Below, piece after piece: positions 16,539 through 39,841 of a DNA stretch of 64,000 nucleotides. The notes beneath the pieces were generated by a model. The model searched no databases. It was given only the letters and a program-made list of their open reading frames with translations, and was not told the DNA's origin. The DNA comes from Lepidodermella squamata (Eukaryota > Animalia > Gastrotricha): NCBI GenBank assembly GCA_047495785.1, contig JBLDXI010000046.1, positions 1,240,001 through 1,304,000 on the forward strand, given 5' to 3'. Both the position numbers and the translations under genes were made by a program. How positions within the stretch are numbered: position 1 is the first letter of the stretch; each line of letters starts with the position of its first letter.

Positions 16539-16719
16539 ACGTTATAAATAAAGTTGCAATCAGAAGCAACTTGGTGTCGCTCTCTTTTTTGCTTAAATAT
16601 TAGCGATACAAATCTAAGTCGAACACGCGATCACTTCCTAATTAGCTATCACATAAGAATCACAATATTGTTCTTAGTCATTGCGTAGATGCCAGCCGCC
16701 AACCGGCACATCGTTACAA

Positions 16720-20163: not shown

Positions 20164-21297
20164 TCAAGCTCGACGGGACCGTTTTAAGCTTTTCTTCTTA
20201 GGGCAATCGATGTACTTGTGCTCGTAAGAGCTGCAGTTATGGCAGCGTTGGTCCCCTTTTAAATTTAAATAATCTCGAACGCGTTTAATAAAGTCAGTAT
20301 TCAAGTAACTTGCAACTTCATACCGATGGCGTTTAGCCGACATGGAATGCCGGGAAGCCCAGTCATTAATATATTCCAACGCATTTTCGGATTCTGCACG
20401 TGCGTGAGAAGGTTCAGTGAAGCCTTGAAGTACAACGATTTTCTTAATCCCAGCTTGAATTATATTTTTGCCGCAGGAGTACTTGATTTTTGTCGTCTCT
20501 TCAGCGATGAGCTCTGCCTTCTTCTGTCGACTTCTTTCCGACTTCTCAATTTTAGCGATTTTTGCATAACTTGCGGCGTCGCATGGCATTCTTGTCACGT
20601 AGAGTGAGCAGTCCTCCAAATTAAGTGTTTTCCTAAATAGCAGAGCATTTATTTCGGCGTGGCAGTTCCGTGTCTTCGGCATCGGGTTAGTATTTATTCC
20701 AGCAGCATTGCCATTCCAACCGATGGAGACTATTCGGCAAGCGTCATCGGCAATTACGCATCCAACTTGATCCCACTCATAATTGCTGTGTTTGGCAGCG
20801 AGCAGAGCAACCATCATGAAGAATTCATCCCATGATATCCGCTTTCGAATATCGTTATTGAAATAAGACTTCTGGAATGCATCAGCCAAATTTGACATAA
20901 GTTTAAAGCTGGAACATTCTTCTTTGGGGTTTTCAAAACTAATATTACCGATTTGATGATCTATTTTCACTGATCTTGTATACATCGAAACCTTAGGCTT
21001 GTAAGTTTTTTTATCTATCGTAAGTTGAATGCCGAAAATGGTAGCTTGCTCCGGGAGGATCGCCACTGTTCTAAAATGAAATGCATTCATTTCGGCGTCG
21101 ACTGTCTTGTTACTTTTCATTGTCGGTACAGTGTTAGTTGTATCACCCGTGTAGCCGATTCCAATTATCGGGTCCCTCAGTTTGACGACCAAACAAGCTC
21201 CTTCTTTGCGATCGCCTTTGCAGCGCATTGCAGCAGCAAGAGCGACAGAGTAATAATATTCACGCCATTCTTCATCCTGATGTGAGTGCCCAGACAT
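20164..21297 (-). CDS. Deaminase gene B, copy 1: tandem dCMP/cytidine deaminase domains (N-terminal degenerate, C-terminal HAE...PC-x35-C) + CCHC zinc knuckle; CDADC1-like architecture
   Basis: 377 aa, intronless. Domain 1: WREYYYSVALAAAMR, GACLV, IIGIGY, DAEMNA. Domain 2: SWDEFFM, QVGCVI, IVSIGWNG, CHAEINALLFR, LYVTRMPC, CGKNIIQAGIKKI. Knuckle CHNCSSYEHKYIDC followed by a basic tail. Confidence 0.9.
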   Translation of the reverse strand: MSGHSHQDEEWREYYYSVALAAAMRCKGDRKEGACLVVKLRDPIIGIGYTGDTTNTVPTMKSNKTVDAEMNAFHFRTVAILPEQATIFGIQLTIDKKTYKPKVSMYTRSVKIDHQIGNISFENPKEECSSFKLMSNLADAFQKSYFNNDIRKRISWDEFFMMVALLAAKHSNYEWDQVGCVIADDACRIVSIGWNGNAAGINTNPMPKTRNCHAEINALLFRKTLNLEDCSLYVTRMPCDAASYAKIAKIEKSERSRQKKAELIAEETTKIKYSCGKNIIQAGIKKIVVLQGFTEPSHARAESENALEYINDWASRHSMSAKRHRYEVASYLNTDFIKRVRDYLNLKGDQRCHNCSSYEHKYIDCPKKKSLKRSRRA

Positions 21298-23191
21298 GAT
21301 TTTATACTAAAATATGCTACCTTAATTACAGAAAACTTGAAAATTGGTTTTATTGATGGAATTGATGACATTATGAGTTAGTAAAGTACTTTATAGATTC
21401 TGGGGTCACATACTAGCAAATAATAATAGCACGGCCTAATGCGAAGAGAGCAGGTCTAAAACTGTGTTGAAGAATTGTGTTTCACGTTGTATGTTGCGCA
21501 AGAGTCACATGCTGATTGGTAGTTAGCCGAAACCAAAACTCAGCCGAAGGTAGGGCACTTCCGCACAGGTTGTTCTGCACAGTAATTAATAAATCATATC
21601 ATTAGTGTGTAATTTATTGTTTAATTGCGCACTAAGCGAGACTGGAAATAAGTTCCGCACAAGACTATTCCGCACACAAAAACTTCCGCTCATAGAGATT
21701 AGCCCGAAGTGAATCGACGTCCAGGCACTTGAGACAAAAATAGGGATAAACTGAATAAATGAATTGATGCTAAACGTGGCTAACAATCCAGATAGACCGC
21801 CCGCGGGAAATCAGATCCGCACAATTGAAGTTGTTGAAATCGTAACCAGAATAGCAGTCTATCTTATTCTAGTCATCTATTTAACCATGTCGCGCTCATT
21901 GAGATCCAACAAACAGATTAAATATTTTGACGCTCTACCCCCAAGAACACGTCGAGCAAAACAGAAGGCTGATGTGGCAGTGCTAGCAGTCGCAGATGTA
22001 CCACCACCACCGTTTGAGTTCGCGGACTTACCACCGCCTGTGCTCGTTGATTTGAACGTCGTGTGCTGGACATTCCGGGCATTGCCAAAGAAGAACTGTT
22101 CCCACTCCACCTGCCCCCGCGGCAGTTGCAGTCGAAGCTCCTGGTATTGTTGCAGAGAATAATGCTGTCTTGATTCAGCTCGAAAATCAGTCGCCGATGG
22201 CCGAGGGTGACGACGAGCGTCTCTCGCATCGCCTCCACCATGGCCACCACAAAACCGAAAGAAGAGCCTAAACCTTTTCTGCCCCAACCGCCGCCGCTGG
22301 AGCCGCAGGAACAACCTCAGCAGCCAGTGATACCTCAGCCGCCAGCCCAACAATGGCTACCTCCAGTTCAACCACAGGTGAAACTTCAAGAACAACAGCC
22401 TCAACAGCACGCGCTTATGATGATGATGATGATGCAGTTTTTTGCACAGGTGAAATTTAAAATTAAATTAAAAAATTCTGCTAACTTTATACGAACGACG
22501 AATCCACCTCAAATTTTCATTATTTTTTGAATATTTTTCGAATATTTACCGACAATGTTGACAAACGCACATCCTTAATTTGAGACTAAAACGGTAGATT
22601 TCCCCAAACTCTCTTTTGTTTCGCCCAAAATATTTGAAACAAAAGAAAAAAATTCGTTATTTGAAACAAATTATTAAAAAGAATTCGAAAAATTGAAATG
22701 GAAGCAAAATTTTCTCTGAATGATGACGTCGAAGAGCAATAAAAATATAATTAAAAAAATAATAAAATGAAATGTTTAATAATAAAAATAATTTAATTTA
22801 ATTTGAAAAGGCATTTCCTCAGCAGCAACTGCAGATGGCGCCTCAGGAACCGCTTCAACCTCAACTTCAACCACAGGCTCCTCAACCGCAGGCACCCATC
22901 CCGCCGCCGGAACCCATCCCATCGCCGGAACCCGAAGGAGAAAAGGGTTCTTTGCCACCACCGTCATTTGGGGTAATCTGGGTCATTGGGGCTATTCGGA
23001 CGAATGTTCATGCAAACAGGAGAATGAGCATGGCTCAAAAACAATCCGGCCGTTAGCAATAAAATTTTGCACGGAGTTGGGTGGAAAGACGACCCACATA
23101 CCGAAAAAATTTCATGACCTGAGAGTAAGTGGTTAGGAAGATACGGGTTCACCTTTCAGGTGTAAGTTTAACTCAGTTTAACTACTGTTCT

Positions 23192-24031
23192 TACTTGATA
23201 TAAACACCCATGTAGGGTATAATTTGAAGAGAAAGCGCATTGGCAGAGAACTCTTTTTCACTTTATTTGAACGTGACGTTTCGGCTCCCTCGCGAGCCAT
23301 CATCAGACTAGAAAGCAAAACAAGATAAAGAACCAGGTAAAGGGTTCTCGATCGAATAGTCGCGTCCGGCATTCAGACAGACAGGTCGAAGTCCGAGCCA
23401 GTGCGATTCATCGTACCCTTCAAGGACGAGAAGTGCGCTCGCCAACTCAAGTCCAGATTGAAAGAGCTCGCCGGGAAGCTGCTTGTACCAATCCAGGCTG
23501 TTTTCACCAGCCGGAAGATCGCGGAAAATTTTGGGGCCAAAGAACCGAAGCCAGACCTGGTCAACCGCCAGTGCGTCGTCTACCAGTTCAAATGTGGCCA
23601 GTGTGACGCTGGCTATATCGGAATGACGGAGAAGCACCTTCACCAGCGCGTTGAACAACATTGGCTACAGTCCAGCTCGATAGGGAAACATTTGCGCTCG
23701 CATGAATTGCCTGATGGCTTCAACCTGCACGCGTGTTTCACGGTGTTACGCAAATGCAGAAGCAGATGGGACTGCTTATTGCACGAAAGCTTGTTGATAA
23801 AGAAGATCAAACTAGCAATGAGCCTAAACGTGCAATCAGATTCTATCAAATTGAAGCTATTTTAGTGCTATTCATAATTTTTTGTTGTGGACTTTCTTTG
23901 TTGTGATTTCCCCCTTTACCTGGTTCTTTATCTTGTTTTGCTTTCTAGTCTGATGATGGCTCGCGAGGGAGCCGAAACGTCACGTTCAAATAAAGTGAAA
24001 AAGAGTTCTCTGCCAATGCGCTTTCTCTTCA
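23192..24031 (+). mobile_element. Second-family Penelope-like element: inverted pseudo-LTR, GIY-YIG fragment (23401-23865), pseudo-LTR
   Basis: CVVYQFKCGQCDAGYIG motif; 12-bp target duplication aactactgttct at 23180-23191 and 24032-24043; inverted pseudo-LTRs. Confidence 0.9.
23948..23983 (+). ncRNA. Minimal hammerhead ribozyme (inverted copy at ~23274-23309, minus strand)
   Basis: gtCTGATGAtggctcgcgagggagccGAAAcGTCac; stem II ggctc/gagcc covaries with the family-1 ggtcc/ggacc. Confidence 0.82.
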
Positions 24032-24408
24032 AACTACTGTTCTGCGTTGAATTACCTGGACCCGAAGATAATTTTGCTGGACCTGCGCCCAATTTTTCCT
24101 GAATCTACAGACGCTAGGGCACTCATGAAAATTGAAAACGCCCCGATCCGACTAATACTTTTGTCTAATTAATTGCGTCCGAATAGCCCCATCAAAAAGC
24201 GAATTTGAGGGGCTATTCGGTCTATCCTTGGAATATGCTAATTAAAAGCGTTGTGCAAAAGTTCCTTGCTGCTTAAAGCGCACTTGAACTTCATTAGCTA
24301 ACTAATTCTTTGAATATGCTGGTAAGGTTACAAAAGACTAATATAACGAGCCATACGACAATTATAATTAATTACGGCTGTAATTGAAAAAATATAATAC
24401 GGCTATAA

Positions 24409-24790
24409 TTGAAAGATTCAGATTTAGCTAAAGAAGCGGCTAATTTGCTGAATGACTTCGCCACGATGTCTAAAAGTCTCTACGCGATTCGAAACGAGTT
24501 TGAACAGGGCAACCCGAAGACAATTGGGGAGAATTGTGACCAGATTGCGGTGGTTGATGTCGATGACAAAGAGGACCTAGTAAGAAAATACGTCGTTTCG
24601 AACATTGGAAAACGGTTTCTGCGATCGATGATGATGCTTTCATTTGGGTTTTTTCTTGTTTTCGCAACCGATTCTGATCTTTTCCGACTAGCGGAGTCAG
24701 ATCGGTGGTTCCTAGACGGCACTTTTAAGGTGGTTCCTAAGAAACTCGGGTTTTATTAATTATTTACGATTCACGTCGGCATTGGGCGCC
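24409..24790 (+). pseudogene. MULE transposase remnant
   Basis: VFATDSDLFRLAESDRWFLDGTFKVVP ... FY*LFTIH is the MULE first-catalytic-Asp motif, with an in-frame stop. Confidence 0.8.
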
Positions 24791-25567
24791 TATCAGAACT
24801 CCTCATTCGTGAGGAGCAAATCACCCGAGCGAACCTAAATAAACCGTCGAAAGTCCGTCGCCGCCTAGCTTACATTCGTGTTCACGACCGCCTTAACAGC
24901 TTATTCGATCAACTAGTAGATTCAGGCGAATTAGCCTTCATGGCCTTTCTCGATTCTGCGAGCTACAGCATGGCCGACATCAAGGAGGTCCTACCCGACT
25001 CGGACGAAGATTGGGACATCGCCGCTGCTCGGACGCAGGCTGCGATGGCCGATGATGGCTGGGTTGAGGCGATCGAAGAAGTCGAAGCCGCTTTTGCTGC
25101 TAATTAACCATATTTTACATATTATTTGACTAATTAGTAATTAATCACTGATACATTTTAAGGCAATGAAAATGTGCGGAAATAAACTTGTGCGGAACTT
25201 GACCTGTGCGGAAGGTTCCATTGTAAGGAAGTACCTGTGCTTTTTAAAGGTTGTTTACCTACTCGTTAGTTAATGGATACACACTTCATAAAGAGAAGAA
25301 AAGCGAATAGGTTCGCACGATTTATGTAGCAAGGCGGTGTCTTGAGTATTGATTACGGTCAACTGGCCAATCAGCATGCAGATTTCAACTAAATAACTCA
25401 CACAATTGAGCTTCTAATTGAGGGAGCGCTTCTAAAAGGTTCTATAAGAGTGCCTATACAGCCAGAATGTACAATATCACGCTAGGTTCAATCGCTTCAA
25501 GCGAATAATCCTCCTGGGTAATCGAATTAGCTTTTCGTAATATTTCGGATCCTTCACCCGAGATTAT

Positions 25568-26638
25568 TTAAGCATTTAAATAATCTATAAGACGTTTCAG
25601 TGCCCCACATATGGTAATTACTTTAACTGCCGACTCCCTGGGCTCCTTTTGCCAAACTGGAGTTGGTGTCGGATATTCTTTGCCAATACTCTCATGTTCT
25701 ACCGTCGCTCCTGGATTTCCGAGAATCGCGATCCTCGAAATGCCACTCTGAATCATTGAGGGCAGGCATTGACAGGGAATATTCGGACAGGATGTCATAT
25801 AAACAGTGCAGCCTCGCGCATCGCCGCTTCGTAACATGAGGGATCTGAGAACCGCATTGCAACAGTCTTTACACCGACGGATAAACTTTCCTGAACTGTC
25901 TTTCTCGAATTTATCGTCTTTCATATTCCATCCAATGCCGATAATTTGGCCACGTGGATTAACAACAACAGCTCCAACTGCTTTGTCTTGACTATCTTTA
26001 TAACCAAGGTTATCAGACCGCGTAGATGCCAGCAGTGCCACAGATATGAAAAATTGCTGCCAGTCGAAGCAACACTCCTTTTCAATTTCGACTTGGTATT
26101 CAGGCTTTGTTTTATCTTTAAGATAGCCTTCCTCCTCGGCAATGAAACGTTGCAACTTTGAAATATATACACTGCCTAGCGTGGTTTCGGTTTTTAACTT
26201 GCAATAATCTTGAATTTGCTTCCACTCAGATTTCAGCTCAGGTTCCAGCTTAGTCTTCGAATATTGATACGGCGATATAATCGCTGCCGGAGACAACTGA
26301 CTCAAAATGTAAAGAGCCGGTGCATCTGGGAAATGAGTGAGATACAATATGCATCCGGTCAAGTCATCGATATTCTTAAATAAAACTGCGTTCATCTCTG
26401 ATTCGATGAATGCTTGCGATTTAACCTGATAAGGCCCGTCGATCGGTCCATCGTACCCGAAGCCGGCAAAATATCCGTTTGTGTTGACAATACAAACACC
26501 TCCTTTTTCCTTTTCGTTTTTATGCCTGGCGACTTTCGATCGCAAAGTAGCAAGGTGAGCAATGCCCATAAATAAATCGTGATTCCATCGGGGTTGAAAA
26601 GTCTCAGCTTGACTGTAAATAAATAGTTTATCAGTCAT
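25568..26638 (-). CDS. Deaminase gene A, copy 1: tandem pseudo-deaminase (both domains lack the canonical zinc/catalytic motifs)
   Basis: 356 aa, intronless. Domain 1: WNHDLFMGIAHLATLRS, GVCIVN, GFGYDG, IESEMNA, LTGCILYLTHFPD. Domain 2: WQQFFI, VGAVVVN, IIGIGWN, CCNAV, GCTVYMTSCP..CQC, SMIQSGI. Confidence 0.88.
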   Translation of the reverse strand: MTDKLFIYSQAETFQPRWNHDLFMGIAHLATLRSKVARHKNEKEKGGVCIVNTNGYFAGFGYDGPIDGPYQVKSQAFIESEMNAVLFKNIDDLTGCILYLTHFPDAPALYILSQLSPAAIISPYQYSKTKLEPELKSEWKQIQDYCKLKTETTLGSVYISKLQRFIAEEEGYLKDKTKPEYQVEIEKECCFDWQQFFISVALLASTRSDNLGYKDSQDKAVGAVVVNPRGQIIGIGWNMKDDKFEKDSSGKFIRRCKDCCNAVLRSLMLRSGDARGCTVYMTSCPNIPCQCLPSMIQSGISRIAILGNPGATVEHESIGKEYPTPTPVWQKEPRESAVKVITICGALKRLIDYLNA

Positions 26639-26799
26639 TCCTCACGTGTCAAAATGTCTAAAATTAAACTGATTTAATTTTCCTTCAACTTTAAAACGCA
26701 GCAATTTTCCTGCAAAGGTTAGATCAAAATGAAGCCCTGAATTTGGGATTTTAGTTGCAGGTGGAATTTCTTAAAACGATAAAGGCATTGCTCATAATC

Positions 26800-27193
26800 G
26801 GTTCAATGACTAAAGAGCACGCGATCTAAGAGCAACGATTAAAGAGCAATGCATTAAGATCAACCGATAAGAGAGCAACCGATTTAAGAGCAATTGGTCA
26901 TAAGAGCAATTGGTCATAAGAGCAATTATTAATGATAAATCAGGGCAAAAAAGTGGCAAGCGACTTCATTTTTTTCTGTAGGCGATCAAGTGAATACGGG
27001 AGCCGATTAAACAGCAATTCAGGCATCTTAGGTCGAGATTCACTTGATTAGGAAAAGCAAAAAAATCAAGTCGCGTGCCACTTTTTCATCATTAATAATT
27101 GCTCTCATGATCAATTGCTCTTAAATCGGTTGCTCCAAATGTATTGCTCTTTAATCGTTGCTCTTAGATCGCGTGCTCTTTAGTCATTGAACC
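26800..27193. mobile_element. MITE with 8-bp target duplication
   Basis: tcataatc|ggttcaatgactaaagagcac ... gtgctctttagtcattgaacc|tcataatc; aagagcaa subterminal repeats. Confidence 0.9.
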
Positions 27194-28407
27194 TCATAAT
27201 CGTATAGCGCGTAAATTGCGATTTTTTCAGCAGAGCTGCTATTGGAACAAGAGGCAATGAAATATATCTAAAAAGACTGGAAGGTATTTAGAAATAGGTA
27301 CGTGCGAGAAAAATCAAGGCGCAAAGGCTAAAAGGTGCGGCTTGGAGACTCCAAATATCTGAATGTAAGGACTAACAGGTTCGCTTGGTGCTTTCATTCC
27401 TTAGATAATAGCTACAATAACAACTTTGAAAACATTCCTAATATGCTGTAAGTTCAGAATTTATCAAGTTCGGCCAGTGCTTGCTACATTTTGACGCTAC
27501 TGGTCAGTGCCGAGGTGAAAAAGCCCACGGCAGCCACCCACGATCACCGATATGAAAAGCTAGTCTTTTTGGATAATTAATCACTCGAGTCAAGATAAAT
27601 GGGTTCGCGATTATTATCAGCTGGCTAATAACAGTCCAAATAATTGCCTAATGGGCCTGTTTGTTAATTTCCAGGAAAAAGCATCACGGCCTCATAGAGA
27701 ATTTCATCAAGGCGTGTGCAGCACCGAAAGGCGAAAATGTATCTCAAGTCGTTCGCTCCAAAAACCTAAGTGGGCGATAAAAAAACATCACGATGTTCGA
27801 GCTAGCCAACTTATGATACATGATGCCGGTTGTTCCAGCCCATTGCTTTGTTACGCGATAAATAAAAGAGCCAGCAATTTCACGCATACCGTTTATTTCT
27901 TGTCAGCTAAATTTTTCTATCACTTTCAAGACGACATGTTTCGCAATATATCATAGCAGATTTATACGATTTATGCTGCTTCACAAAATACCCGAAATAG
28001 CCCTAAACCAATTCAGGGCATTGTTATAATACGACAAGCCCGGAATAGCAAGTAAATAGAAAGCATAATACATAGCCCAAGAAAAGCCGACATCAAAAAA
28101 TCAAGTAAACTACAAACAAAATTGCTACGATTCTTCCAAACTGCACAAATTGTCACTGATTGCCGAGCGCACGAAAATAAGTAACAGACAATATATATAT
28201 ATATATATTTGTATAATCAATATATCAAGTAAAAATTGCATCGAATCGCGACGAAAAACAGTCAATTACTCTACGGTTATGTTACTAAGAAAATCGAGAA
28301 TGACGGTGTGTTTTCAAAGAAGAGGTGGCTGAAAGCAATTTCTCACAAAATTCGTAAAAAAAACAGGCAGTAAACGATGTTAACAAAAACCGACCAAAAT
28401 GTTAACT

Positions 28408-29296
28408 TCATAGAACTTCAAGGTCAACATGTCGCACTTCAGGGTATTTCTTCTTCAAATTCTTCTCAACCCGATCGATTTCCGCACCAATCAGGTCGAC
28501 AATACCCTCACCGTGCCGCAACATGAATGCCTCAAGGTCGTCCGTGTTCTTCGACGCTTTTTGCAGTTCCATCAGCAGAATGTCCAGGTCAATTCGGTCG
28601 AGGTAGACCCGCGTCAATTCGCGCCCGTCGATATCGACTTCGGCCTTAAAACGCACCCGCCTACCACCCATTTCGGTCGCTTTTATATCGTGAACAGCTC
28701 GAATGACTCGATCAGCCTCCAGTTCTTGACGCATCATTTCCCGCCGCGTTTCTGGGATCGACTGGCCGACGAGTATTACGGCATTTGTGTAAATGATTGA
28801 GGAGGCGACATCGCCGAGAAGCGTGCCGATGATGAGTGAACCGACCGCGTCGGGAATGTGCGAAGCGTAGACGTGGGACAGCGCGAGGCACGTGGCGGCT
28901 ACGCCGACGCCGAGAACTGCGACAAAGTCCTCGGCTAGCACAACCATTGTGTTTCAAGTAGTAAGTAGCACTTTGAACCGCGCGCTGATTGGTCAATTTA
29001 TTGTTGCTATGACTCCGGGATGAAACAATTTAGTCGTGCAATCCACTAATAAATTATTTTCTATTTATGCAAAAAATGACCTTGCCACACCCTCTGCACG
29101 GTTTCCATTGACCACGAGCGTAAACCCCATAATAATCGTAGCAATTTACTGCGGCAAAAAACACCTGTTGCAAAAAATTCAATGGATCGCCCAACCTACA
29201 TGTTTCATCCGGGAGTCATAGCAACGATCGATTGACCAATCAGCGCGCGCCCAGAAATGCTACTATTTACCTCAAGCACAATGACATTGACTGAAC
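28408..29296 (-). pseudogene. SLC30A9: Partial SLC30A9 duplicate (last exon only, 5' end interrupted by a MITE)
   Basis: Peptide near-identical to the 41049-41622 exon (ends VRHVDLEVL); homology resumes briefly after the MITE (acattgactgaa) and then stops. Confidence 0.85.
28945..29283. mobile_element. MITE with 2-bp (ac) target duplication inside the SLC30A9 fragment
   Basis: cattgtg...cacaatg ends and long imperfect arms. The empty site cacaacattgactgaa is visible in the paralogs at ~33451 and ~41580. Confidence 0.85.
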
Positions 29297-29420
29297 AAGA
29301 CTTTTTATTTTCACTGTAAAAGGACACTAAATATCTGACAAAGCTAAAATGCCGCCGGCAAACGGCAAGCATTAGTCAGTTTCGCTGTTAATGCTTGTCA
29401 AATCTCTGTATCAATGCTTC

Positions 29421-30566
29421 TCATGATATTGAGAGCCTGTTAATTATGATTACGATAATTATTATTATAATGTATCGCAATTTAGCCCAAAATGCTATTT
29501 CGGGACATGTTGCTTTTTTATGGTACAGTGAGCCGCAACGATAGCAGATAGTATCTCGCTTAATTTCCAATACCATGCGGACAGATTTGATAAAATCAGT
29601 TGTTAGATGGGTGGCTACATCCTCTTGGGTTCGTTTCTCAGGCATCCCATGTCTCGCAGACCAGTTGTTTAGTTGTAAAAGAGCATCATCATCGAGCCTT
29701 TGCATGGTATTGGGGTCGAGCCGCGGAAGAACATGAAGTTTTTTTATTCCGGATTGAATTATGTTTTTCCCGCATGAATAATCCATTGTTTCCTTCTTCT
29801 TTCTCTGCATCCTCTCCTTCTTCCTGTCATCACTCTCAACTGAATATTCGGCGTCACATGGCATCCGAGTAACGTATAGCGTGCAACTCTCCAAATTTAG
29901 GCGATGCCGAAAGAGAAGAGCGTTTATTTCGGCATGACAATTATCGTCGCCGGATTTGACATTTTTCACACCGACAGGACTTCCACTCCAACCGATTGAG
30001 ACCACCCTGCCGATGTCGTCAGCGATAACGCATCCGACCTTGAATCGTTTTTCCGAATGCTTGGCAGCATACATCGCTAAAACCATGTGAAATTCCTCCC
30101 ATGAGATGCGCTTCAGATTTGAGGCGAAGAATTTGGCTGCAACAGGCTTACAAAGAGGATCGAAGATGTGTCGTCGATCGCTGTCATCTTTTTCTGTGTC
30201 GAATTTTATTGTTTTGTATCTATGGCTGACAGTGACTAACTTGAAGTAGTAGTCGCGTCGCTCCCTCGTTACCGTCACACAAAAAAGGATTACTATGTCT
30301 GGCAACATCGCCTGAGTCCTGAAATGGAAAGCGTTCATTTCAGCCTCGATCTCAATCTGCGCAGCAGGCCCATCGACTACATTTGTAGGATTACCACGAT
30401 AGCCGATGCCGATAATCTCGTCTTTAAATTTTCTGACTAGACAAGCTCCGTGCTTAGTATCTCCAACTTTGCATCTCAAGGCGGCAGCCAGCGCTACGCA
30501 GTAGTAGTATCGCGACCATCTAGCATTCTCTTTTATTTCTTTTATAATCTGCTTCGACCTTTCCAT
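29421..30566 (-). CDS. Deaminase gene B, copy 2 (dead domain + HAE domain with PC-x27-C + CCHC knuckle)
   Basis: 381 aa, intronless; EAEMNA in domain 1, CHAEINALLFR and YVTRMPC...YSCGKNIIQSGI in domain 2, knuckle CYRCGSLYHKKATC. Confidence 0.9.
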   Translation of the reverse strand: MERSKQIIKEIKENARWSRYYYCVALAAALRCKVGDTKHGACLVRKFKDEIIGIGYRGNPTNVVDGPAAQIEIEAEMNAFHFRTQAMLPDIVILFCVTVTRERRDYYFKLVTVSHRYKTIKFDTEKDDSDRRHIFDPLCKPVAAKFFASNLKRISWEEFHMVLAMYAAKHSEKRFKVGCVIADDIGRVVSIGWSGSPVGVKNVKSGDDNCHAEINALLFRHRLNLESCTLYVTRMPCDAEYSVESDDRKKERMQRKKKETMDYSCGKNIIQSGIKKLHVLPRLDPNTMQRLDDDALLQLNNWSARHGMPEKRTQEDVATHLTTDFIKSVRMVLEIKRDTICYRCGSLYHKKATCPEIAFWAKLRYIIIIIIVIIINRLSIS

Positions 30567-30667
30567 ATTAACTTTTAATATAACTTGATCTAAAAATAGT
30601 AAATATTTATAACTTCGATGAACATTTTTTATTTTCCAAGTCCGCAGCTAATTCGATGGATTCTGAA

Positions 30668-31693
30668 TCATATTTCTGCCTCGAAGAGTAGACATAATTC
30701 GCTCATAGCGGATTCATTTCTGTCGATGACCCTGCATGCACATAATTTAGGTTCTTTGTGCCAGACTGGACCGAGTTGCGGGTAAACCTCCAACAAGGCA
30801 TTCAATTTTTGTTGGGAGTGTTTCGGATCATCAAAAACAGCTATTCTTGATATACCGCTTTGAATCATCGAAGCAATGCATGGACACTTGTCGGGTGGCC
30901 ATGAAGTCAAGAAAATTGTGCAGCCACGCGAATCATCGGTGCGGAACATGAGTGCAGCAAGAACTGCTTTACAGCAAGCAGGATACTCAATGCAGGATTC
31001 TTCGTCGGATTCTTCGTCAGAATTCCAACCGATGCCGATAATTTGGCCTCGTGTATTGACAATCACTGCACCGAATTTGCTGTCTTGGTTTTGCTGCGAA
31101 GCCAGAATTGCAGTTGACATGAAAAATTCCTCCCATTTCAGATATCGTTTTCCTTCTCCCAGGCAATTCCCTTCAACAAAGTTTTTCAAAGCGGCGAATT
31201 TATAGCGTGCGTCGATGTTTATTTTTTTTTCTTTCAATGGCTCAGTTCTTTCGGGAAAACAATATTTCGCCACTAAGTCCATATTAAAAGCCGTTGTCGA
31301 CACGATGGCTTTTGGTTTCAACTGCCGTAGCAGATAGAGAGCCTTCGTTTCAGGAGAATGAGTGAGATAGAGTGTGCAATTCGTTAAATCATTGACACTT
31401 TTGAACAGGACAGCGTTCATCTCCGATTCAATGTAGGCGTCAGTCATATTTTGATGAGGTCCATCTATTGGTCCATCGTAGCCGACGCCTGCTAAATACC
31501 CGTTCTCGGTAACTAAACAAACTCCAGCTTTCTCAGTGTTATTGCAGTGCCTAGCAGTTCTCGATCTCAAAATAGCCAAGTAGGCGATCCCCATGTATAG
31601 AGTATGCTCCCAGTCAGGCTCGTCTTTTTCTTCTCTAAGATACAGGTACAAGCCAGCTTCATCCCTTGAACTTAGATCAACCGAAGTCCCCAT
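30668..31693 (-). CDS. Deaminase gene A, copy 2 (double pseudo-deaminase)
   Basis: 341 aa, intronless; IESEMNA and THSPE in domain 1; CCKAV and WPPDKCPC in domain 2. Confidence 0.88.
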   Translation of the reverse strand: MGTSVDLSSRDEAGLYLYLREEKDEPDWEHTLYMGIAYLAILRSRTARHCNNTEKAGVCLVTENGYLAGVGYDGPIDGPHQNMTDAYIESEMNAVLFKSVNDLTNCTLYLTHSPETKALYLLRQLKPKAIVSTTAFNMDLVAKYCFPERTEPLKEKKINIDARYKFAALKNFVEGNCLGEGKRYLKWEEFFMSTAILASQQNQDSKFGAVIVNTRGQIIGIGWNSDEESDEESCIEYPACCKAVLAALMFRTDDSRGCTIFLTSWPPDKCPCIASMIQSGISRIAVFDDPKHSQQKLNALLEVYPQLGPVWHKEPKLCACRVIDRNESAMSELCLLFEAEI

Positions 31694-32919
31694 AGTGGTG
31701 TTTGATCCGCCACGGCCACTATGCTAGTAAGCAATTGAATTATTATTTAGATAAAACTAATTTAGGCCGAAGATGCTAGAAGCCAACATATGGTTGTATA
31801 GCCGATAAAATAATAAGTAGGGTTGCCAATAACTAATATTAAAGTATTACTAGCTTGTGAGGTGCAGAATAGCACGCGCAATTGTCTGAACGGTAATTTC
31901 AGGCTACTTATAAACTTGAGCTTCCCGGTAGTATCGAGATAATGAAACGTAAGGTATTATGAATTATAATTCATGGTATTCACTTGATAAAAAAATTTCG
32001 ACGACAGGCTCTCATTATTGTAGTCAATTATTACCGCTTGGTTGTCCTTTAAATAAATAGCACAAGGCCACCGAAGTAATACCAGCATGAAGTATTGTAT
32101 GAAGCAGTTATCTTTATCTTTGGAGCCATCCGACCTCAGCTTGGAGCGTAGGAGTTTCGCCGTCAAGATAGTGGCACTAGCTGACATGTGCCTCGCAAAA
32201 AAACCGATTAATTCTTCAGTCGCCAACCCGAAATATCATATAGGTATCATTCCACCACTCCATGGTTAATTTTTCCGGTGCATTTTCAGTACTTGAATTT
32301 AGCCACTCCTTCAGCAACTCTACCGCAATTACTGCCGCATCCTTGAGACTTTATTTGTGGCAAATCCCACCACAGGATAAGTAAAAAAGCCAGATTTCAC
32401 GCAAATCGTTTATTTCCTGTCAGCTATATCTTTCTATCACTTTCGAGACGACATGTTTCGCAATATATCATATCAGATTATACGATTTATGGTGCTTCAC
32501 AAAATAGCCGAGAAATAGCCCAATACCAATTCAGGGCATTGTTACAATACGACAAGCCTGGAATAGCAAGTATAGAGAAAGCATAATACATAGCCCAAGA
32601 AAAGCCGACATCAAAAAATCAAGTAAACTACAAACAAAATTGCTAAGATTCTTCCAAACTGCACAAATTGTCACTGATTGCCGAGCGCACGAAAATAAGT
32701 AACAGACAAAATATATATATTTGTATAATCAATATATCAAGTAAAAATTGCATCGAATCGCGACGAAAAACAGTCAATTACTCTATGGTTATGTTACTAA
32801 GAAAAATCGAGAATGACAGTGTGTTTTCAAAGAAGAGGTGGCTGAAAGCAATTTCTCACAAAATTTGTAAAAAACAGGCAGTAAACGATGTTAACAAAAA
32901 ACGGACCAAAATGTTAACT

Positions 32920-34455
32920 TCATAGAACTTCAAGGTCAACATGTCGCACTTCAGGGTATTTCTTCTTCAAATTCTTCTCAACCCGATCGATTTCCGCACC
33001 AATCAGGTCGACAATACCCTCCCCGTGCCGCAACATGAACGCCTCAAGGTCGTCCGTGTGCTTCGACGCTTTTTGCAGTTCCATCAGCAGAATATCCAGG
33101 TCAATTCGGTCGAGGTAGACCCGCGTCAATTCGCGCCCGTCGATATCGACTTCGGCCTTGAAACGCACCCGCCTGCCGCCCATTTCGGTCGCTTTTATAT
33201 CGTGAACAGCTCGAATGACTCGATCAGCATCCAGTTCTTGCCGCATCATTTCACGCCGCGTTTCTGGGATCGACTGGCCGACGAGTATTACGGCATTTGT
33301 ATAAATGATTGAGGAGGCGACACCGCCGAGTAGCGTGCCGATGATGAGAGAACCGACCGCGTCGGGAATGTGCGAAGCGTAGACGTGCGACAGCGCGAGG
33401 CAGGTGGCGGCTACGCCGACGCCGAGAACTGCGACACAGTCCTCGGCTAGCACAACATTGACTGAAGGATCATAACCACGACGAACGTATTCTCTATAGA
33501 AAAAATAGGAATTCAACAAATTTGATCGCGAAGTAGATTCGAATTTCGCTTAAAATTTAATCAATTTTTTTTTGAAGGATTTGTGGATTTTCGGTCACAT
33601 CTTTATGCTCATCTTTTAAATTCAGGGGATCGAGAATTTTAACCATTTTTTCTATTTTTTAATGGGTCTTACTTCAAGCGGAACCAAATTTTTGAATTTT
33701 CCATGAGCCTAAAACCAATTTTCGAAAACTTTCCAGAATGACGCGATTATAAATCATCATCGAAACTCAGCGTAAATTCTGTATAAGACGCATTTTTCAC
33801 TATAGAGTTAATACATTGCCTTAATTTTCTAGAAATATTCGAAAAGCGACTTTTTGCTTATCTAAGGTTCCGCAACATGCAGGTTTGGTTCCATCAGAAT
33901 ACATTCTGATATTAATTTCCAGTGCCAAATCCAAATTTTAGGCAAAAAATTTGAATAACATCAATTTTTGAATTTTTAAGATAGATTTCTCGAATTAGGG
34001 CCTCATCACGACTTCTCAAAAACTGAAGATAAATTCCTGAATACGGCGGGAAAAAAATTAAAAAAAAATAGTTAAAATTCAATATTCACTAAAACTTCAT
34101 TTTCAACTTTTTAAGGTGGATTTTTTAGAAAACATACATAAAAGGTAGTTTAGCCTCGGCCGCGGCGCGTCGAATTTGGCGAGCTCCGACGAGCAGACTG
34201 CCGCTTTCGGTTATGAAAGACCCGCCTAGAATAACTAGAGCCCAAGATAGAGATTCGAGCTGTTCCGGGTGAAGAAGGGCTTGAATGCCGTGGAACCACG
34301 ACAGGCCAGCGCCGACGAAGAAAATACCAACGCCAGAAATCAGCGAGCTGATGTAGGTCAAATTATACCAGCCATATCTAAATAATCAAATTAAATATGA
34401 AAAATAATCATGGAAAAAAATTACGGATGAATTTGGTCTGGTCTTCTTTTCGACT
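32920..34455 (-). pseudogene. SLC30A9: 5'-truncated SLC30A9 duplicate (last two exons and part of the preceding exon)
   Basis: Exons ~32920-33493, ~34138-34377 and 34425-34455 match the gene at 41049-42583. Homology ends abruptly at ~34455. Confidence 0.85.
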
Positions 34456-35319
34456 TCGTCTTCTTACGACCGAAAATTGGCCGCGCGCTCACACACCACG
34501 CTCCTATGGCTCCTACTTGGGGTCAATGCAATTTTTTCCATTTTACCTAAATTCTCCATCTTTTTGCTTAATGAGGCGCAACTTCTGATGAGGATAAAAA
34601 GACGTGTCCTAAAAAGAACTGAAGTTCAACGCTCGCAGTTCACCAGCTTCGTTATATGTGTATGGTATAACATGAGTAAAGAGTTCATTTCTGAACGGAG
34701 TCGACCGAGATTTACGAATCGAAACGAGCCGGAGGCGAGTTGAGATGAGTAAATCGAGTACGGCGAGTTCAGATATAAACGATTTACGAATGTTATACCG
34801 TAAAATATCGAATTGTCAAAGCTACTCGACCTATATTTTTGACGACAATTCTATATTTGTGCGCTGCGCACCACCACTTTTACAAATTACAAAGTAATCC
34901 CACCTTCCTGACCACCGTTCGAAGTCTATATGCTCTGTCCGGGCCTTAATCCTCTCCAACCTAAATATTGTCGTTAGTTGTAGTTATGTCACATGCGAAG
35001 CAAGGACGGAATGAAAAGCATTTTGGTTGTTCGACCGCGCGCCCGGAGGGTGTAACCGGTGAAAAATCGGGAATCATGTACCGCCGCGACTGTGAAAACT
35101 TACTCACTCCTTATTACGCAATCATACATTCATACTTACAATCAAGTCACGGGGTTGCGTACTTGTATAGCGTATTACCTATGTCAGATTTTCCAATAAA
35201 TAGCATTCGAGCGCAGTGAAAGAAATCGCGCTGAAATGGAATCTTTACAAAAAAGCGAAGAAATTTCCAAACCACGCGCTATTTACAGCCTGATATGAGT
35301 GTACCTATATAGTACGGTG

Positions 35320-35590
35320 GATGTTACTGTAAACTGCAAGTACAGTGATCGAGGCTGTACTTCGTGTACAGTCATCAAGGCTGTACTTCGAGTACAGTCA
35401 TCAATGCTGTACTTCGTGTACAGTAATCAAGGCTGTACAGCGGTCTACAGTCTCCCATACAGCTGTACTTCCGTGTACAGCCTGATGAGCTGTACTTCCG
35501 GTACAGCCACCAAAAGACTGTACAATAAAAGTACAGCTCAGGACTGTACCGGAGAGTACAGCCGGGTGTTATACTGTACTAGCCAGTACA
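35320..35590. repeat. Degenerate ~26-bp tandem repeat (gctgtacttcgtgtacagtcatcaag-like)
   Basis: Repeated ctgtac/gtacag half-palindromes. Confidence 0.7.
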
Positions 35591-35798
35591 GACACTTTTT
35601 TGCCTGAAGTGCGGGTTCTTCCGCGCCACGAACGTATTTGTCATAAGAACGAAACCGCCATGGACTGCAAACTTGTTGCTGTCAACTAATGACAGCAAGG
35701 TTACAAGCTGGTAAAATATCGCCGGGGATAACATAGAGAACCAGGCTGTCACCTTGTAAGGACAAAATTCGGTATCTTTGTTGCCAATTCCTCTAGAT

Positions 35799-36269
35799 TC
35801 AAGCCAGCCTGCTCAGCGAAACCATCGCGTTTTTCAGCTCAGACCGGTAAATTTCGGGGATGCCGACCCAGTTTTCCGATCTCACGCGAGCCCTCATCTT
35901 GGCAAGAGCTATATCGGACTCGACTGAGTAGTAAAAATTGCTGATGCTGTTGCCACTGTTGCCGCAGTCGTAGAACTGGCCGGCAGGTAACGGAGGGGCG
36001 GACGGTGCCACAGGAAGCTGGCTAGATATAGCCACGCTTGCTATTGCGGGTAACGATGAATCAGGCGCATTGAATGAATTGCTAGGCGTTGAAGAATTTC
36101 GTGGAACTAAGTGGGCGATAGTTGAGTTGTTGTAGGTAACACTTGCCGCAGATGAAACAGTTTTAGTGTCGACAGCGTCCAACTCAGTCTGGCCTGTGTG
36201 AACTCTACCAGCGTGAATCTTAAGGCCGCGTTCATTTTTAAAAGTTTTATTGCAAACTTTGCAAAGCAT
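35799..36269 (-). pseudogene. C2H2 zinc-finger ORF remnant, probably the N-terminus of a transposable-element protein
   Basis: CKVCNKTFKNERGLKIHAGRVH followed by an S/P-rich linker; embedded in repeat-rich DNA. Confidence 0.5.
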
Positions 36270-37410
36270 CTTGTTGCGAATAAAACACCAAGTGAAGAAT
36301 GAGTAGCTACATTAATTCATTTCACGCATCAATCGTATCGCGCGTTAACGTGTTGTTGTTATGAATCGATCACCAATTTTTACTTTTATTATCCCTTGTT
36401 ACGAAAAGATCACCATTTTCGAAATATTAATCGGGAATTACTTAATTTTTGTTACGAAAAGTTCACCACCTTCGATACGAATATGAATTGATACGAATTT
36501 ACTCTATCTGAAAATATCACGTTACGAATGAATCACGGTACGAATTTGCTGGTACGAACTTACTATGAATCTTTTATTGAAAACTGATCGATTTTTAAAA
36601 AGATAGAAGGGGGGTCCCAAAACGGCACCCAAAGTCTATCTGCTTGCAACTTTTTCTGAAATCCGATTTCAGCTCCAATCGTCTTGATTTTTATGTCAAA
36701 CGAAAGCTGAAGAGACGGAGAATTTTATGCAAAAAACCCATGATTTAAACATCGAAAGTGTCCACAATCACCACACGTTACGGTAGCCTAGGCTTTTTAG
36801 CTAGCTTTGGCTAAATGGAACAAGCTGATTAGCTTCACATTTCTCCTAGTGTTATCTTATTCGCGATGATTTCAGGCAAAAAATTGGTGTAGTCCTGCGT
36901 CCGTCAACATCTCCGTCACGATTCGATGGGGTTTTTATTTGACGTTGGATACCCCATCCATGTGGCTACTCGGAATCCGGGTGCCATTCGAATCAGGGCC
37001 CTTGGAAACGTGTAAAAAAGCAAAGAGACCAGGGGGTCATATTTTGACGCCAACCGAGTAACCTCAAATACGGTACAATCACAGTTCATATTCAATGCCG
37101 TTTCGTCGCATTTTTCATTCTATAGAATAAAAATGGAAAATGGTATTATAGCGTTACGAATATCTGCATATTATGAGTATAATGCCTGGCTCGTTCTAAT
37201 CATTGCTGAATGAAAAAGTGCTCCAATGAACCGAGTTTAACACCGAGTTTAATAACACCACGGCAAATCGAATCTAATTTTTATTTAAATTCCAAGATAA
37301 GCTGGGTATGATTAAGCATTAAAGAGTCAGAAATATCTGGCAAAGCTAGAAGCTGTCGCCGGCAACTGGCAAGCATTTATTTAATGCAAATCAGGGTAAG
37401 CAAACGCGGG

Positions 37411-38559
37411 TCAAATTTCGGTATCAATGTTTCTCAATATTTCAGCCCAAAATGAAATGAAACTTGATAAGTGTTTTTTTAAGAGCGCAGTGTCTGATTC
37501 GACGCTTTCGGGGCAGTTTTTCATTTTATGATACAAGGAGCCACAAAGATGACAGATCGTGTCTTGCTTAATTTTCAAAACCATGCGAACAGAGTTGATG
37601 AAATCAGTCGTTAGATGGGTGGCTACTTTCTCGTGTGTTCGTTTCTCAGGCAACCAGTGTCTCGCAGACCAGTCATTCAACTGTAGAAGAGCATCATCGT
37701 CGAGATGTTGCTTGGTATTGGGGTCGAGCCGCGGGAGGACATAAATTTTTTTTATTCCTGATTGAATCATGCTCATCCCACACGAATATCGCATTTCTTT
37801 CTTGTCTTCTTCCGGCTTAACTGAATTTTCGGCGTCACACGGCATCCGAGTAACATATAGCGTGCATTTCTCCAAATTTATGCGATGCCGAAAGAGAAGA
37901 GCGTTAATTTCAGCGTGACAATTATCGTCATTGGGCGCCACTTTCTCCACCCCGGTAGGGCTTCCACACCAACCGATTGAAACCACTCTGCTGATGTCAT
38001 CAACGATAACGCATCCGACTTTGTAGTCTAGTTTCGAACGCTTGGCAGCAAACATCGCCAAAATCATGTGAAATTCCTCCCATGAGATGCGATCCAAATT
38101 TGATTTGAAGAATGTGTCTGCAACAGGCTGACAAATGAGATTGAAACAATTGCGTCGTTTCTTAACGTTCTCGTTTTGTTCCACGACGGGCGCTGTCGTT
38201 TTATATTTATGGTTGACCTTTACTAATTTGTAATAGTACTGGCATTGTTTGTCGACTATTTTGACACCGAAAAGGATTACGATGCCCGGTAACATCGCCT
38301 GAGTCCTGAAATGGAAAGCGTTCATTTCAGCATCGATGACCATCCGAGCAGCCTGTCCATGGACTAAATTTCTTGGATGACCCCGATAGCCAATGCCAAT
38401 AATCTCGTCTTTGTACTTCTTCACCAGGCAAGCTCCATGCTTGTGTTGCATATCTTGGCATCTTAAGGCGGCAGCTAGCGCTACTGAGTAGTAGTATCGT
38501 GACCAGCGAACATCATATGGATTGTTTATTTCATCCTCGATATTTTGCCATTCAGACAT
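37411..38559 (-). CDS. Deaminase gene B, copy 3 (dead domain + HAE domain with PC-x18-C + CCHC knuckle); likely start MSEWQ at 38559
   Basis: DAEMNA, CHAEINALLFR, YVTRMPC...YSCGMSMIQSGI, knuckle CHLCGSLYHKMKNC. Start chosen from alignment with the other copies and the upstream acceptor. Confidence 0.9.
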   Translation of the reverse strand: MSEWQNIEDEINNPYDVRWSRYYYSVALAAALRCQDMQHKHGACLVKKYKDEIIGIGYRGHPRNLVHGQAARMVIDAEMNAFHFRTQAMLPGIVILFGVKIVDKQCQYYYKLVKVNHKYKTTAPVVEQNENVKKRRNCFNLICQPVADTFFKSNLDRISWEEFHMILAMFAAKRSKLDYKVGCVIVDDISRVVSIGWCGSPTGVEKVAPNDDNCHAEINALLFRHRINLEKCTLYVTRMPCDAENSVKPEEDKKEMRYSCGMSMIQSGIKKIYVLPRLDPNTKQHLDDDALLQLNDWSARHWLPEKRTHEKVATHLTTDFINSVRMVLKIKQDTICHLCGSLYHKMKNCPESVESDTALLKKHLSSFISFWAEILRNIDTEI

Positions 38560-38653
38560 TATATAAAACTTTAAACTAGAAATGTATAAAATTTTCAATT
38601 GTTCGTCGTTGTGAAAAATAAAATGCACGCTATCACTTAGGTAGTTTATTAAC

Positions 38654-39841
38654 TCAACTGATCTGCAAAGGTGATTCATCACTTGTGATCACAAGGTCCT
38701 GGCCTGGAAAAAGGTTGCATATTGCCCCCATCGCGATTCCACTCTTACTGGCAATCCTACAGGCAACTAATTTGGGTTCTTTGTGCCAAACTGGACCGGG
38801 TTGAGGGTACACATTTAGCAATTTACTTAACTTTTTTTGGTCGTCACCATCGCTTGGGTTACCCAAAATAGCGATCCTTGATATGCCACATTGAATCATT
38901 GAAGGAATGCACCGACATTTATCGCGATCGGCATCTTCCAACCCTAATGGCCATGAGGTCATAAAAATAGTGCAGCCTCGTGAATCATCGGTGCGGAACA
39001 TGAGTGCAGCAAGAACTGCTTTACAGCAAGCAAGGTACTCAACATTTGATTCTTCGTCAGAATTCGATTCTGTGCCAATTGCTTCTGCACATTGTTGGTC
39101 GGACTTGTCTTCGGAATTCGATTCTGTGCCAATTGCTTCTGGATATCCTTTGCCAGAATTCCAACCTATGCCGATAATTTGGCCCCGAGTATTAACAATC
39201 ACTGCACCGAATTTACTGTTCAGGTTCTGTTGCGACGCCAAGATAGCAGTTGACATAAAAAATTCCTCCCATTCCAAGAAACGTGTTTTTTCTCCCTGGT
39301 GGTTGTTCTTGACAAATTCTATCAGAGCTGGCAGCTTCAGGCCTGCATTAAGCTCCACCCGAGTCGCTGACAAAATCCAATGAATTTTTTTAGGAAAGCA
39401 ATATTCTTTCACTAAGTCCGTCTCAGCTGCACTGTAAACTGTTGCCGACACGATTGCTTTTGGCTTCAACTGTCTAATTAGATAGAGAGCCTTCGTGTCA
39501 GGAAAATGAGTAAGATAGATAGTGCAATTCGTTAAATCAACGACACTTTTAAATAGAACAGCGTTCATCTCCGATTCAATATAGGCTTCAGTCATATCTT
39601 GATGAGCTCCATCTATTGGTCCATCGTAACCGACGCCTGCTATATACCCGCTTTCGTCGACTATACAAACTCCAGCTTTCTCAGTCTTATTGCTGTGCCG
39701 CGCAGTGCTTGATCTCAAAATAGCTAAGTAAGCGATCCCCATGTATAGAGTATGCTCCCAGTCAGGCTCGTCTTTTTCTTCTCTAAGATACAGGTACAAG
39801 CCAGCTTCATCCCTTGAACTTAGATCAACCGAAGTCCCCAT
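38654..39841 (-). CDS. Deaminase gene A, copy 3 (double pseudo-deaminase)
   Basis: 395 aa, intronless; first 44 aa identical to copy 2; IESEMNA, THFPD, CCKAV, KCRC; internal EAIGTESNS duplication. Confidence 0.88.
   Translation of the reverse strand: MGTSVDLSSRDEAGLYLYLREEKDEPDWEHTLYMGIAYLAILRSSTARHSNKTEKAGVCIVDESGYIAGVGYDGPIDGAHQDMTEAYIESEMNAVLFKSVVDLTNCTIYLTHFPDTKALYLIRQLKPKAIVSATVYSAAETDLVKEYCFPKKIHWILSATRVELNAGLKLPALIEFVKNNHQGEKTRFLEWEEFFMSTAILASQQNLNSKFGAVIVNTRGQIIGIGWNSGKGYPEAIGTESNSEDKSDQQCAEAIGTESNSDEESNVEYLACCKAVLAALMFRTDDSRGCTIFMTSWPLGLEDADRDKCRCIPSMIQCGISRIAILGNPSDGDDQKKLSKLLNVYPQPGPVWHKEPKLVACRIASKSGIAMGAICNLFPGQDLVITSDESPLQIS

Follow-up and report, generated by a model that had tools for sequence, protein, structure and literature searches.

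Three pairs of linked, divergent dCMP-deaminase-type genes in the gastrotrich Lepidodermella squamata, one gene of each pair apparently without a complete catalytic centre

What kind of system is encoded where two deaminase-like genes, one of them apparently lacking any catalytic centre, stand together three times in one locus? The question is raised by a 64,000-nucleotide stretch of the Lepidodermella squamata genome (Gastrotricha; GenBank assembly GCA_047495785.1, contig JBLDXI010000046.1, positions 1,240,001 to 1,304,000 of the forward strand). This whole stretch is referred to here as the window, and positions are counted from its first letter. An earlier note on this DNA described six intact minus-strand open reading frames (ORFs), always in the order A then B, and the ORF list confirms them. 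All six are continuous and form three pairs, with A upstream of B in each. The analysis shows that A and B were passed on and duplicated together, and that selection has kept them as a pair. The genes and the features that matter most within them are the following.

A1, 25568-26638, minus strand: 356 amino acids; two DCTD-type domains, neither with H-A-E; a tandem pseudo-deaminase.
B1, 20164-21297, minus strand: 377 amino acids; a truncated dead domain, a live-looking domain, a C-terminal CCHC motif and a basic tail.
Codons of H213-A214-E215 in B1, 20653..20661, minus strand: the sole complete catalytic triplet of pair 1; coordinates calculated from the ORF start.
Insert between the two zinc cysteines of B1, amino acids 242-272, 20482..20574, minus strand: 31 residues.
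CX2CX4HX4C motif of B1, amino acids 352-365, 20203..20244, minus strand: a pattern aligned in B1, B2 and B3.
A2, 30668-31693, minus strand: 341 amino acids; PF00383 matches and an AlphaFold2 model.
B2, 29421-30566, minus strand: 381 amino acids; PF00383 matches and motif alignment.
A3, 38654-39841, minus strand: 395 amino acids; PF00383 matches and motif alignment.
B3, 37411-38559, minus strand: 382 amino acids counted from the ATG.

The deaminase model PF00383 is found twice in each of the six proteins, at 45-75 bits against a Pfam gathering cut-off of 25 (75.5 bits in B1). The reading of every protein as two domains of the deoxycytidine monophosphate (dCMP) deaminase type therefore stands. 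The domains differ in what is left of the active site. Where H-A-E is expected, domain 1 of A has E-S-E and domain 1 of B has D-A-E or E-A-E, and neither has any zinc cysteine. In the first domains of both proteins the zinc ligands are thus lost and the Glu is kept. Domain 2 of A has K-A-V or N-A-V in place of H-A-E together with four invariant Cys (CC...CxC), and it may still hold a metal. Domain 2 of B has an intact C-H-A-E followed by P-C, an insert of 14-31 residues and S-C, so that the usual PCxxC is split. In the alignment of the B proteins C212, H213, A214 and E215 (B1 numbering) are invariant, and the insert is rich in K, E and R, with 31 residues in B1, 23 in B2 and 14 in B3. Exactly one complete catalytic centre is predicted for each pair, in domain 2 of B. 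The earlier note was correct that this domain alone keeps HAE and two Cys, and the spacing of the Cys is non-canonical.

A motif of the allosteric G(Y/W)N(A/G) type is recognisable in all 12 domains. Its Asn is kept only in domain 2 of A and domain 2 of B1, the second domains having GWNG (B1), GWSG and GWCG (B2 and B3) or GWN(S/M) (A), and the first domains GYDG (A) or GY(T/R)G (B). The R/H-S motif of helix 1 is partly retained. As a reference for retention, 40 positions that are at least 85% conserved across 66 single-domain DCTDs were used. Of these near-invariant residues 23-25 are kept in domain 2 of B, which is therefore changed at 15-17, and 17-21 are kept in the dead domains. Between G-W-N-G and C-H-A-E the loop of B is shorter than that of DCTD by about 12 residues, and its conserved W, K and Y are gone. 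Near the C-terminus all three B proteins have CX2CX4HX4C, aligned and starting at amino acid 352 (B1), 341 (B2) and 336 (B3). The tails beyond are the least conserved part of B. The 3' end of B2 (29421-29500) is a run of Ile and Val codons past the knuckle, derived from an AT-rich simple repeat, unlike the basic tail of B1 and unlike B3. With hhalign, A aligns collinearly with B across the two domains (probability 99.4%, approximately 25% identity), and the two genes are paralogues.

Selection was estimated by the Nei-Gojobori method as the ratio of nonsynonymous (dN) to synonymous (dS) substitution between copies 2 and 3, with 300 bootstraps and in windows of 50 codons. For A2-A3, dN is 0.17 and dS 0.66, a dN/dS of 0.25 (bootstrap 95% 0.17-0.34). 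For B2-B3, dN is 0.22 and dS 0.65, a dN/dS of 0.34 (bootstrap 95% 0.25-0.46). None of the 300 bootstraps reaches a dN/dS of 1. All but one of the scorable 50-codon windows are below 0.45, including those in both dead domains of A, in the dead domain of B and in the knuckle region of B, where dN/dS is 0.13. The outlier, at 0.78, covers columns 151-200 of B, where dS is low. Between pair 1 and the other pairs 52-55% of the residues differ and dS is saturated, with both pair 1 frames open. The copies as a whole span 45-68% amino acid identity, with 45-48% between pair 1 and the others (47-48% for A1 against A2 and A3), and A and B have diverged equally. With dN/dS well below 1 and frames open at saturated dS, the six ORFs are maintained by selection. 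This is so amid transposon insertions, as had been pointed out: reverse transcriptase (RT) ORFs, GIY-YIG ORFs and dispersed repeats lie around the deaminase genes. The GC content at third codon positions (GC3) is 0.41-0.48 in A and B against 0.58-0.67 in the neighbouring conserved genes, which would fit young or weakly expressed genes and proves nothing.

A tree built from the individual domains groups the three copies of every domain type, all four types alike, with strong support. The branching order is (1,(2,3)) wherever it has support; it is not resolved for the N-terminal domains of B, in which B2 and B3 are still the closest pair. This shared order means that the pairs were duplicated as units, and upholds the view that the system expanded as A-B pairs. 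The stems of the domain types are very long, with 1.1-2.7 changes per column, and have no supported affinity to any outside DCTD group. In BLAST comparisons the kinship of N-terminal with N-terminal domains is not clear (31 bits), and that of C-terminal with C-terminal domains is somewhat higher (46 bits).

Each pair was said to lie downstream of an SLC30A9 3' end, and last-exon copies of this gene are indeed found upstream of all three. These and the associated features are:

S1, 28408-28947, minus strand: truncated SLC30A9 last-exon copy upstream of pair 1.
S2, 32920-33519, minus strand: SLC30A9 last-exon copy upstream of pair 2, with a further piece at 34140-34376.
S3, 41049-41678, minus strand: last exon of a nearly complete SLC30A9 copy upstream of pair 3, with pieces at 42192-43196 and perhaps 45065-45181.
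Sr, 45677-46543, minus strand: 288-amino-acid ORF of a fourth, more diverged SLC30A9 copy, with pieces at 46250-46699 and 50005-50408; beside the Rab-like gene.
Rab/Arf-like GTPase gene of two exons, approximately 51132-51943, minus strand: upstream of SLC30A9.

The order along the minus strand is an ISWI-like gene, the Rab-like gene, Sr (50408 to 45680), S3 (ending at 41052), A3-B3, S2, A2-B2, S1 and A1-B1. The description of the SLC30A9 pieces as mere 3' ends is right as to their location, but they are not simply dead ends. Between S1, S2 and S3 dS is 0.10-0.22 and dN/dS 0.02-0.10, and their differences are nearly all synonymous although S1 and S2 are truncated. They may owe this to repeated conversion from a live copy or to expression of the ZnT9 C-terminal piece itself. 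The S pieces appear to be younger than the deaminase genes, or homogenised relative to them. The dS between A2 and A3 is 0.17 in the first 50 codons and climbs to about 1 or more in the second half of the gene. This gradient suggests that a young or converted tract, running from the S exon through the first hundred codons of A, lies over much older A-B pairs. Gene conversion tracts cross gene borders.

ENA metagenome contigs (L002-L005) from a related organism carry a two-exon SLC30A9 with a last exon 80-81% identical in amino acids to the S-type pieces. Their gene order is Rab-like GTPase, SLC30A9 and Sushi-like genes, and the same Rab-SLC30A9 adjacency is present in the window. This genome is very compact, with a 38-nt intron and gene spacing of about 100 nt. 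Neither A nor B was found in these contigs, which are 4-9 kb in length, so that the absence covers just 2.6 kb downstream of SLC30A9. Among named matches the best for the SLC30A9 copy of the window are from arthropods, a rotifer and a tardigrade, at approximately 50-55% identity.

The spacing of the two genes differs between the pairs. In pair 3 the spacer is 94 nt; the other two are:

A2-B2 spacer, 30567..30667, minus strand: 101 nt; AATAAA about 35 nt past the A2 stop, and a pyrimidine run with AG ahead of the B2 ATG.
A1-B1 spacer, 21298..25567, no strand assigned: 4.2 kb of inserted repeats, with a GIY-YIG ORF at 23401-23865 on the plus strand.

A pyrimidine run with AG precedes each B start. 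The spacing of about 100 nt, the AATAAA after the A stop and the pyrimidine run with AG before B would suit an operon with trans-splicing, but in AT-rich DNA this is only a lead. The B3 frame is open upstream of its ATG to a GTG at 38682, and overlaps the end of A3 in another frame. Since this B frame is open for 29 nt into the A3 end, and since in pair 2 the B frame is closed before its ATG and AATAAA lies past the A stop, A and B are separate cistrons. Their expression as a single gene through a frameshift is ruled out. No additional copy of A or B was found in the window by tblastn with all six proteins, and no third conserved ORF was found between the SLC30A9 piece and A at these loci. The dispersed repeats of the A1-B1 spacer recur at 17104-17690. 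A tandem array at 11916-16596, with a period of 1350 bp, bears GIY-YIG ORFs (Penelope-like), and the segment 23416-23863 within the A1-B1 spacer is a 70%-identical copy.

Where do A and B come from? The exact sequences are absent from a collection of 15 billion proteins, and a word-based search with B2 gave eight weak partial matches. A HMMER search of 1.84 billion protein representatives with a profile of the six sequences, in which matching is local and independent of protein length, gave 5287 matches, the best at 155 bits. These matches are ordinary or tandem dCMP deaminases with the scores of ordinary domains. The top scores belong to DCTD proteins with two domains, from wasp, crab, shrimp, aphid, beetle, ant, oyster, tardigrade and sponge. 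When viral contigs, JGI metagenome contigs and prokaryote genomes were scanned with back-translated patterns, no relative came up, the lone prokaryotic match being an ordinary dCMP deaminase. A viral, phage or bacterial origin has no support, with no relative in viral, metagenome or prokaryote DNA and with BFVD fold matches to ordinary dCMP deaminases. The pair appears to be an orphan lineage within the collections searched, which did not include eukaryote genome collections. In the literature searched, no paper connects a deoxycytidylate deaminase with a zinc knuckle or with a tandem pseudoenzyme. The earlier note did not recognise the pairing from any described system, and neither the collections nor the literature search has supplied a counterpart.

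The best sequence match in the PDB is human DCTD (2w4l, E 2.7e-21), which is also the best fold match. A and B appear to descend from a DCTD-type enzyme, and none of the deaminase families compared, as these are defined, seems to include them. Domain 2 of B resembles DCTD (EC 3.5.4.12) in its H-A-E and its G-W-N-G-type motif. However, DCTD is a homohexamer of single-domain protomers with PCxxC, whereas tandem domains are present in all six A and B proteins, all but one of their four domain types are dead and the zinc motif is split. Against the ComEB equivalog TIGR02571 the proteins score 25-52 bits, under the cut-off of 219.

Tandem DCTDs of invertebrates share the arrangement of two DCTD domains in a chain (for example in Leptopilina XP_043462936, Eriocheir, Palaemon, Aphis, Crassostrea, Hypsibius and Amphimedon). 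They differ in that both domains mostly keep HAE and PCxxC and score like ordinary single DCTD, and they have no CCHC motif. Their N- and C-terminal domains are often sisters in the tree, which indicates that DCTD has doubled internally many times and independently. The tandem genes of oyster and tardigrade have introns and no deaminase neighbour within 10 kb. Some invertebrate tandem DCTDs (such as P0031, P0035 and P0040) have a degenerate N-terminal domain. The design of a dead plus a live DCTD domain thus appears to recur in invertebrates, although that of CDADC1 is termed vertebrate-specific in the literature (PMC12184417, PMC12088426). The statement that animals normally have a single DCTD and a single CDADC1 is incorrect twice over, CDADC1 being described as vertebrate-specific and tandem DCTDs being common in invertebrates.

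It is with CDADC1, a (d)CTP deaminase (PDB 9HFQ-9HFT), that B shares a DCTD-like dead domain followed by a live one in a single chain, while A has two dead domains. The dead domain of CDADC1 keeps its zinc (H, C, C; H-A-G), whereas the first domains of A and B have lost all three ligands and kept the Glu. The A/B system further has a partner gene of its own for an all-dead protein, a knuckle and an insert that parts the cysteines, none of which CDADC1 has. Orthology with CDADC1 is ruled out, as 9hfq is absent from PDB sequence searches at E <=0.01 and the metal-ligand pattern differs. The nearest known system by function-like architecture is CDADC1, and the nearest by descent is DCTD.

The remaining deaminase systems are more distant. 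ADAT2/ADAT3 likewise joins a live subunit to a dead paralogue, but as single-domain subunits from unlinked genes, against the linked tandem-domain A and B. ADAT3 retains its zinc ligands without the Glu, the reverse of domain 1 of A and of B. The analogy drawn with ADAT2/ADAT3 therefore holds for the principle of live and dead partners and is otherwise loose, two of the three dead domain types having lost the zinc ligands and kept the Glu. Membership of the TadA/ADAT family is ruled out by scores of 18-22 bits for the TadA-type models against a cut-off of 150, and by placement in a different clade. Double-domain APOBEC3 proteins such as A3G have a non-catalytic N-terminal and a catalytic C-terminal domain, a lineage-specific tandem expansion and nucleic-acid targeting. 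Membership of AID/APOBEC is ruled out as well, with no APOBEC, NAD, SNAD or AID Pfam match at E <=0.1 in any of the six proteins and a DCTD-like origin. The zinc cysteines of ADAR and ADAT1 are also split by a long insert (PC...SC), longer than that of B, which in ADAR2 binds inositol hexakisphosphate. ADAR is an adenosine deaminase of another clade, and any likeness of the zinc site of B to it is convergent. The bacterial anti-phage dCTP deaminase/AvcD shares membership of the zinc deaminase superfamily and gives weak matches. It is ruled out as an identity (NF041025; PADLOC dCTPase) at 16-41 bits against 400, with just the deaminase core aligning, and its kinase-like N-terminal domain has no match in the A and B proteins. 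What is new is the separately encoded, fully dead tandem partner that co-duplicates with a live gene. New also are the split zinc motif and the CCHC motif on a DCTD-type enzyme.

AlphaFold2 models give a similar picture of descent. The B1 model (predicted local distance difference test, pLDDT, 82.4; predicted template modelling score, pTM, 0.84) has only the front half of the deaminase fold in domain 1, followed by a long beta hairpin, and the full fold in domain 2. The insert is modelled as a two-helix hairpin (H239-252 and H257-270, pLDDT 81-91) beside the active site, and past it come helices and the knuckle at moderate confidence. In the A2 model (pLDDT 80.5, pTM 0.83) both domains have the full deaminase fold. 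Foldseek against the PDB places human DCTD 2w4l first for both models. The A2 model alone also matches CDADC1 (9hfs, 9hfr and 9hfq), over approximately 390 columns and both domains, with template modelling scores of 0.43-0.45.

How might such a pair work? DCTD forms a homohexameric ring whose domains each combine a catalytic site with an allosteric one, G(Y/W)N(A/G), while the CDADC1 trimer is an NCNCNC ring where dead and live domains alternate and the dead one is integral to the structure (PMC12088426). Two CDADC1 rings stack upon substrate binding, and the loop that matches the shortened loop of B is a substrate-recognition loop that contacts the alpha phosphate (PMC12088426). By analogy with these enzymes, A and B would assemble as a mixed ring or as stacked rings. 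The three dead domains would provide interfaces or a scaffold, perhaps with nucleotide-sensing sites, and domain 2 of B would deaminate cytosine. At its live site the lid over a mononucleotide would be partly gone, and a charged hairpin would have been added alongside. The idea of a mixed assembly is inferred from the co-duplication, the constraint on the dead domains and the CDADC1 precedent.

The shortened loop, the charged insert, the CCHC motif and the basic tail of B1 favour cytosine in single-stranded RNA or DNA over free dCMP as the substrate. It is tentatively proposed, at something short of an even chance, that the two proteins join in a deaminase ring of mixed composition, with a single live site for each pair, and that the knuckle directs this ring to single-stranded nucleic acid. 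As a substrate, cytosine in single-stranded RNA or DNA is possible without being probable, and is rated somewhat above free dCMP or dCTP, for which the case is only a little weaker. The least certain part is the role. Three long-diverged, fast-evolving copies would fit a function in defence or transposon control, an idea based on copy number, divergence and the analogy with APOBEC3. In its full form the proposal would be of an independent route from an animal dCMP deaminase to a nucleic-acid-directed cytosine deaminase, working as an obligate two-gene complex of one live and three dead domains against transposons or viruses, and in that form it is unlikely. A further twist would be that the A-B system has a third component in the ZnT9 C-terminal pieces, which are co-duplicated and constrained.

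Several points weigh against the proposal of a nucleic-acid-directed mixed ring. The earlier note called B a zinc-knuckle deaminase, and the CX2CX4HX4C spacing holds in all three copies, but there is no significant match to a Pfam zinc-knuckle model. B3 alone gives hits, to zf-CCHC_4 (E 0.057) and to a Lin-28-type model (E 6.9), and B1 and B2 give none. Action on polynucleotides is not known for any member of the DCTD clade. The overall signal is one of purifying selection, and three copies give a test for positive selection no power. A CDADC1-like closed ring of B alone is doubtful, since its domain 1 is modelled without the helices through which CDADC1 makes its ring contacts. A and B would stay adjacent through segmental duplication alone and, as the SLC30A9 pieces were co-duplicated too, co-duplication by itself is no proof of a functional link between A and B.

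The alternative that survives best, little less likely than the proposal itself, is that the pair serves the nucleotide pool. B would be a dCMP or (d)CTP deaminase and A a regulatory or scaffold subunit that has taken over the allosteric sites, the knuckle merely localising the enzyme. The closest relatives by sequence and by fold are all dCMP deaminases, the helix 1 R/H-S motif survives in part, as does the G(Y/W)N(A/G)-type motif, and CDADC1 provides the precedent of a dead and live tandem that is a (d)CTP deaminase (PMC12088426, PMC12184417). Such an enzyme would, however, have a shortened nucleotide-closing loop without its conserved residues, changes at 15-17 of the 40 near-invariant positions and a conserved CCHC motif. 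Identities of 45-68% among the copies are unusual for a housekeeping enzyme, and the scores are far under the family cut-offs (52 against 219 for ComEB, 41 against 400 for the anti-phage dCTP deaminase).

It is improbable that A and B are functionally independent and owe their adjacency to tandem duplication in place, followed by segmental duplication of whole blocks. SLC30A9 exons do ride in the duplicated blocks, gene conversion does cross gene borders, and the solitary tandem DCTDs of oyster and tardigrade show that such proteins can work alone. Yet in each of the three units the two genes are intact and under constraint, despite the age of pair 1, at saturated dS, and its division by 4.2 kb of repeats. 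A is also without any catalytic centre, and so needs some non-enzymatic role; in the known precedent, a dead deaminase domain acts as the partner of a live domain (PMC12088426).

Partnership could also take a hostile form, with B potentially harmful as a mutator or a depleter of dNTPs, and A a dead mimic that restrains it through inactive mixed oligomers, in the manner of a toxin and its antidote or immunity protein. Dead paralogues can poison oligomeric enzymes, and the tight linkage, lineage-specific origin, fast divergence and repeat-rich setting would all suit this. A cooperative complex fits the same facts equally well, and we know of no animal toxin-antidote pair of this kind, which makes antagonism more improbable again. 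That the genes are decaying duplicates, presently functionless, is scarcely credible: the GC3 of 0.41-0.48 is near background and no matching protein is present in collections that include transcriptome assemblies, but all six frames are open at saturated dS, with dN/dS of 0.25-0.34 and no bootstrap at 1.

Elsewhere in the window, an intronless ISWI/SMARCA5-like ORF of 924 amino acids (52361-55135, minus strand) is 72-75% identical to vertebrate (fish), mollusc and arthropod proteins. In place of its 3' end there is a perfect 573-bp inverted copy (51963-52535) of its own helicase region (53974-54546), which is either a rearrangement or an assembly artefact. Two RT ORFs are present, at 872-3208 (plus strand, 778 amino acids) and 10193-11374 (plus strand, 393 amino acids). 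With GC contents of 60% and 35%, their very different base composition indicates different retroelement families. No tRNA or Rfam match was found in scans of the window.

Regardless of function, the locus documents the repeated tandem duplication of DCTD domains in invertebrates. The work on CDADC1 (2025) showed that the fusion of a dead with a live DCTD domain yields a new enzyme; in the present locus a whole dead subunit is encoded by its own gene and co-inherited with the live one. If the partnership of A and B is true, it would be a natural case of pseudo-enzymes becoming partners. If B acts on free nucleotides, the known range of dCTP/dTTP pool regulation in animals would be widened. If instead B acts on RNA or DNA, an editing or restriction deaminase would have arisen independently, as the third origin for the polynucleotide cytosine/adenine deaminases of animals besides AID/APOBEC and TadA/ADAR, and B may offer a compact new scaffold for base editing.

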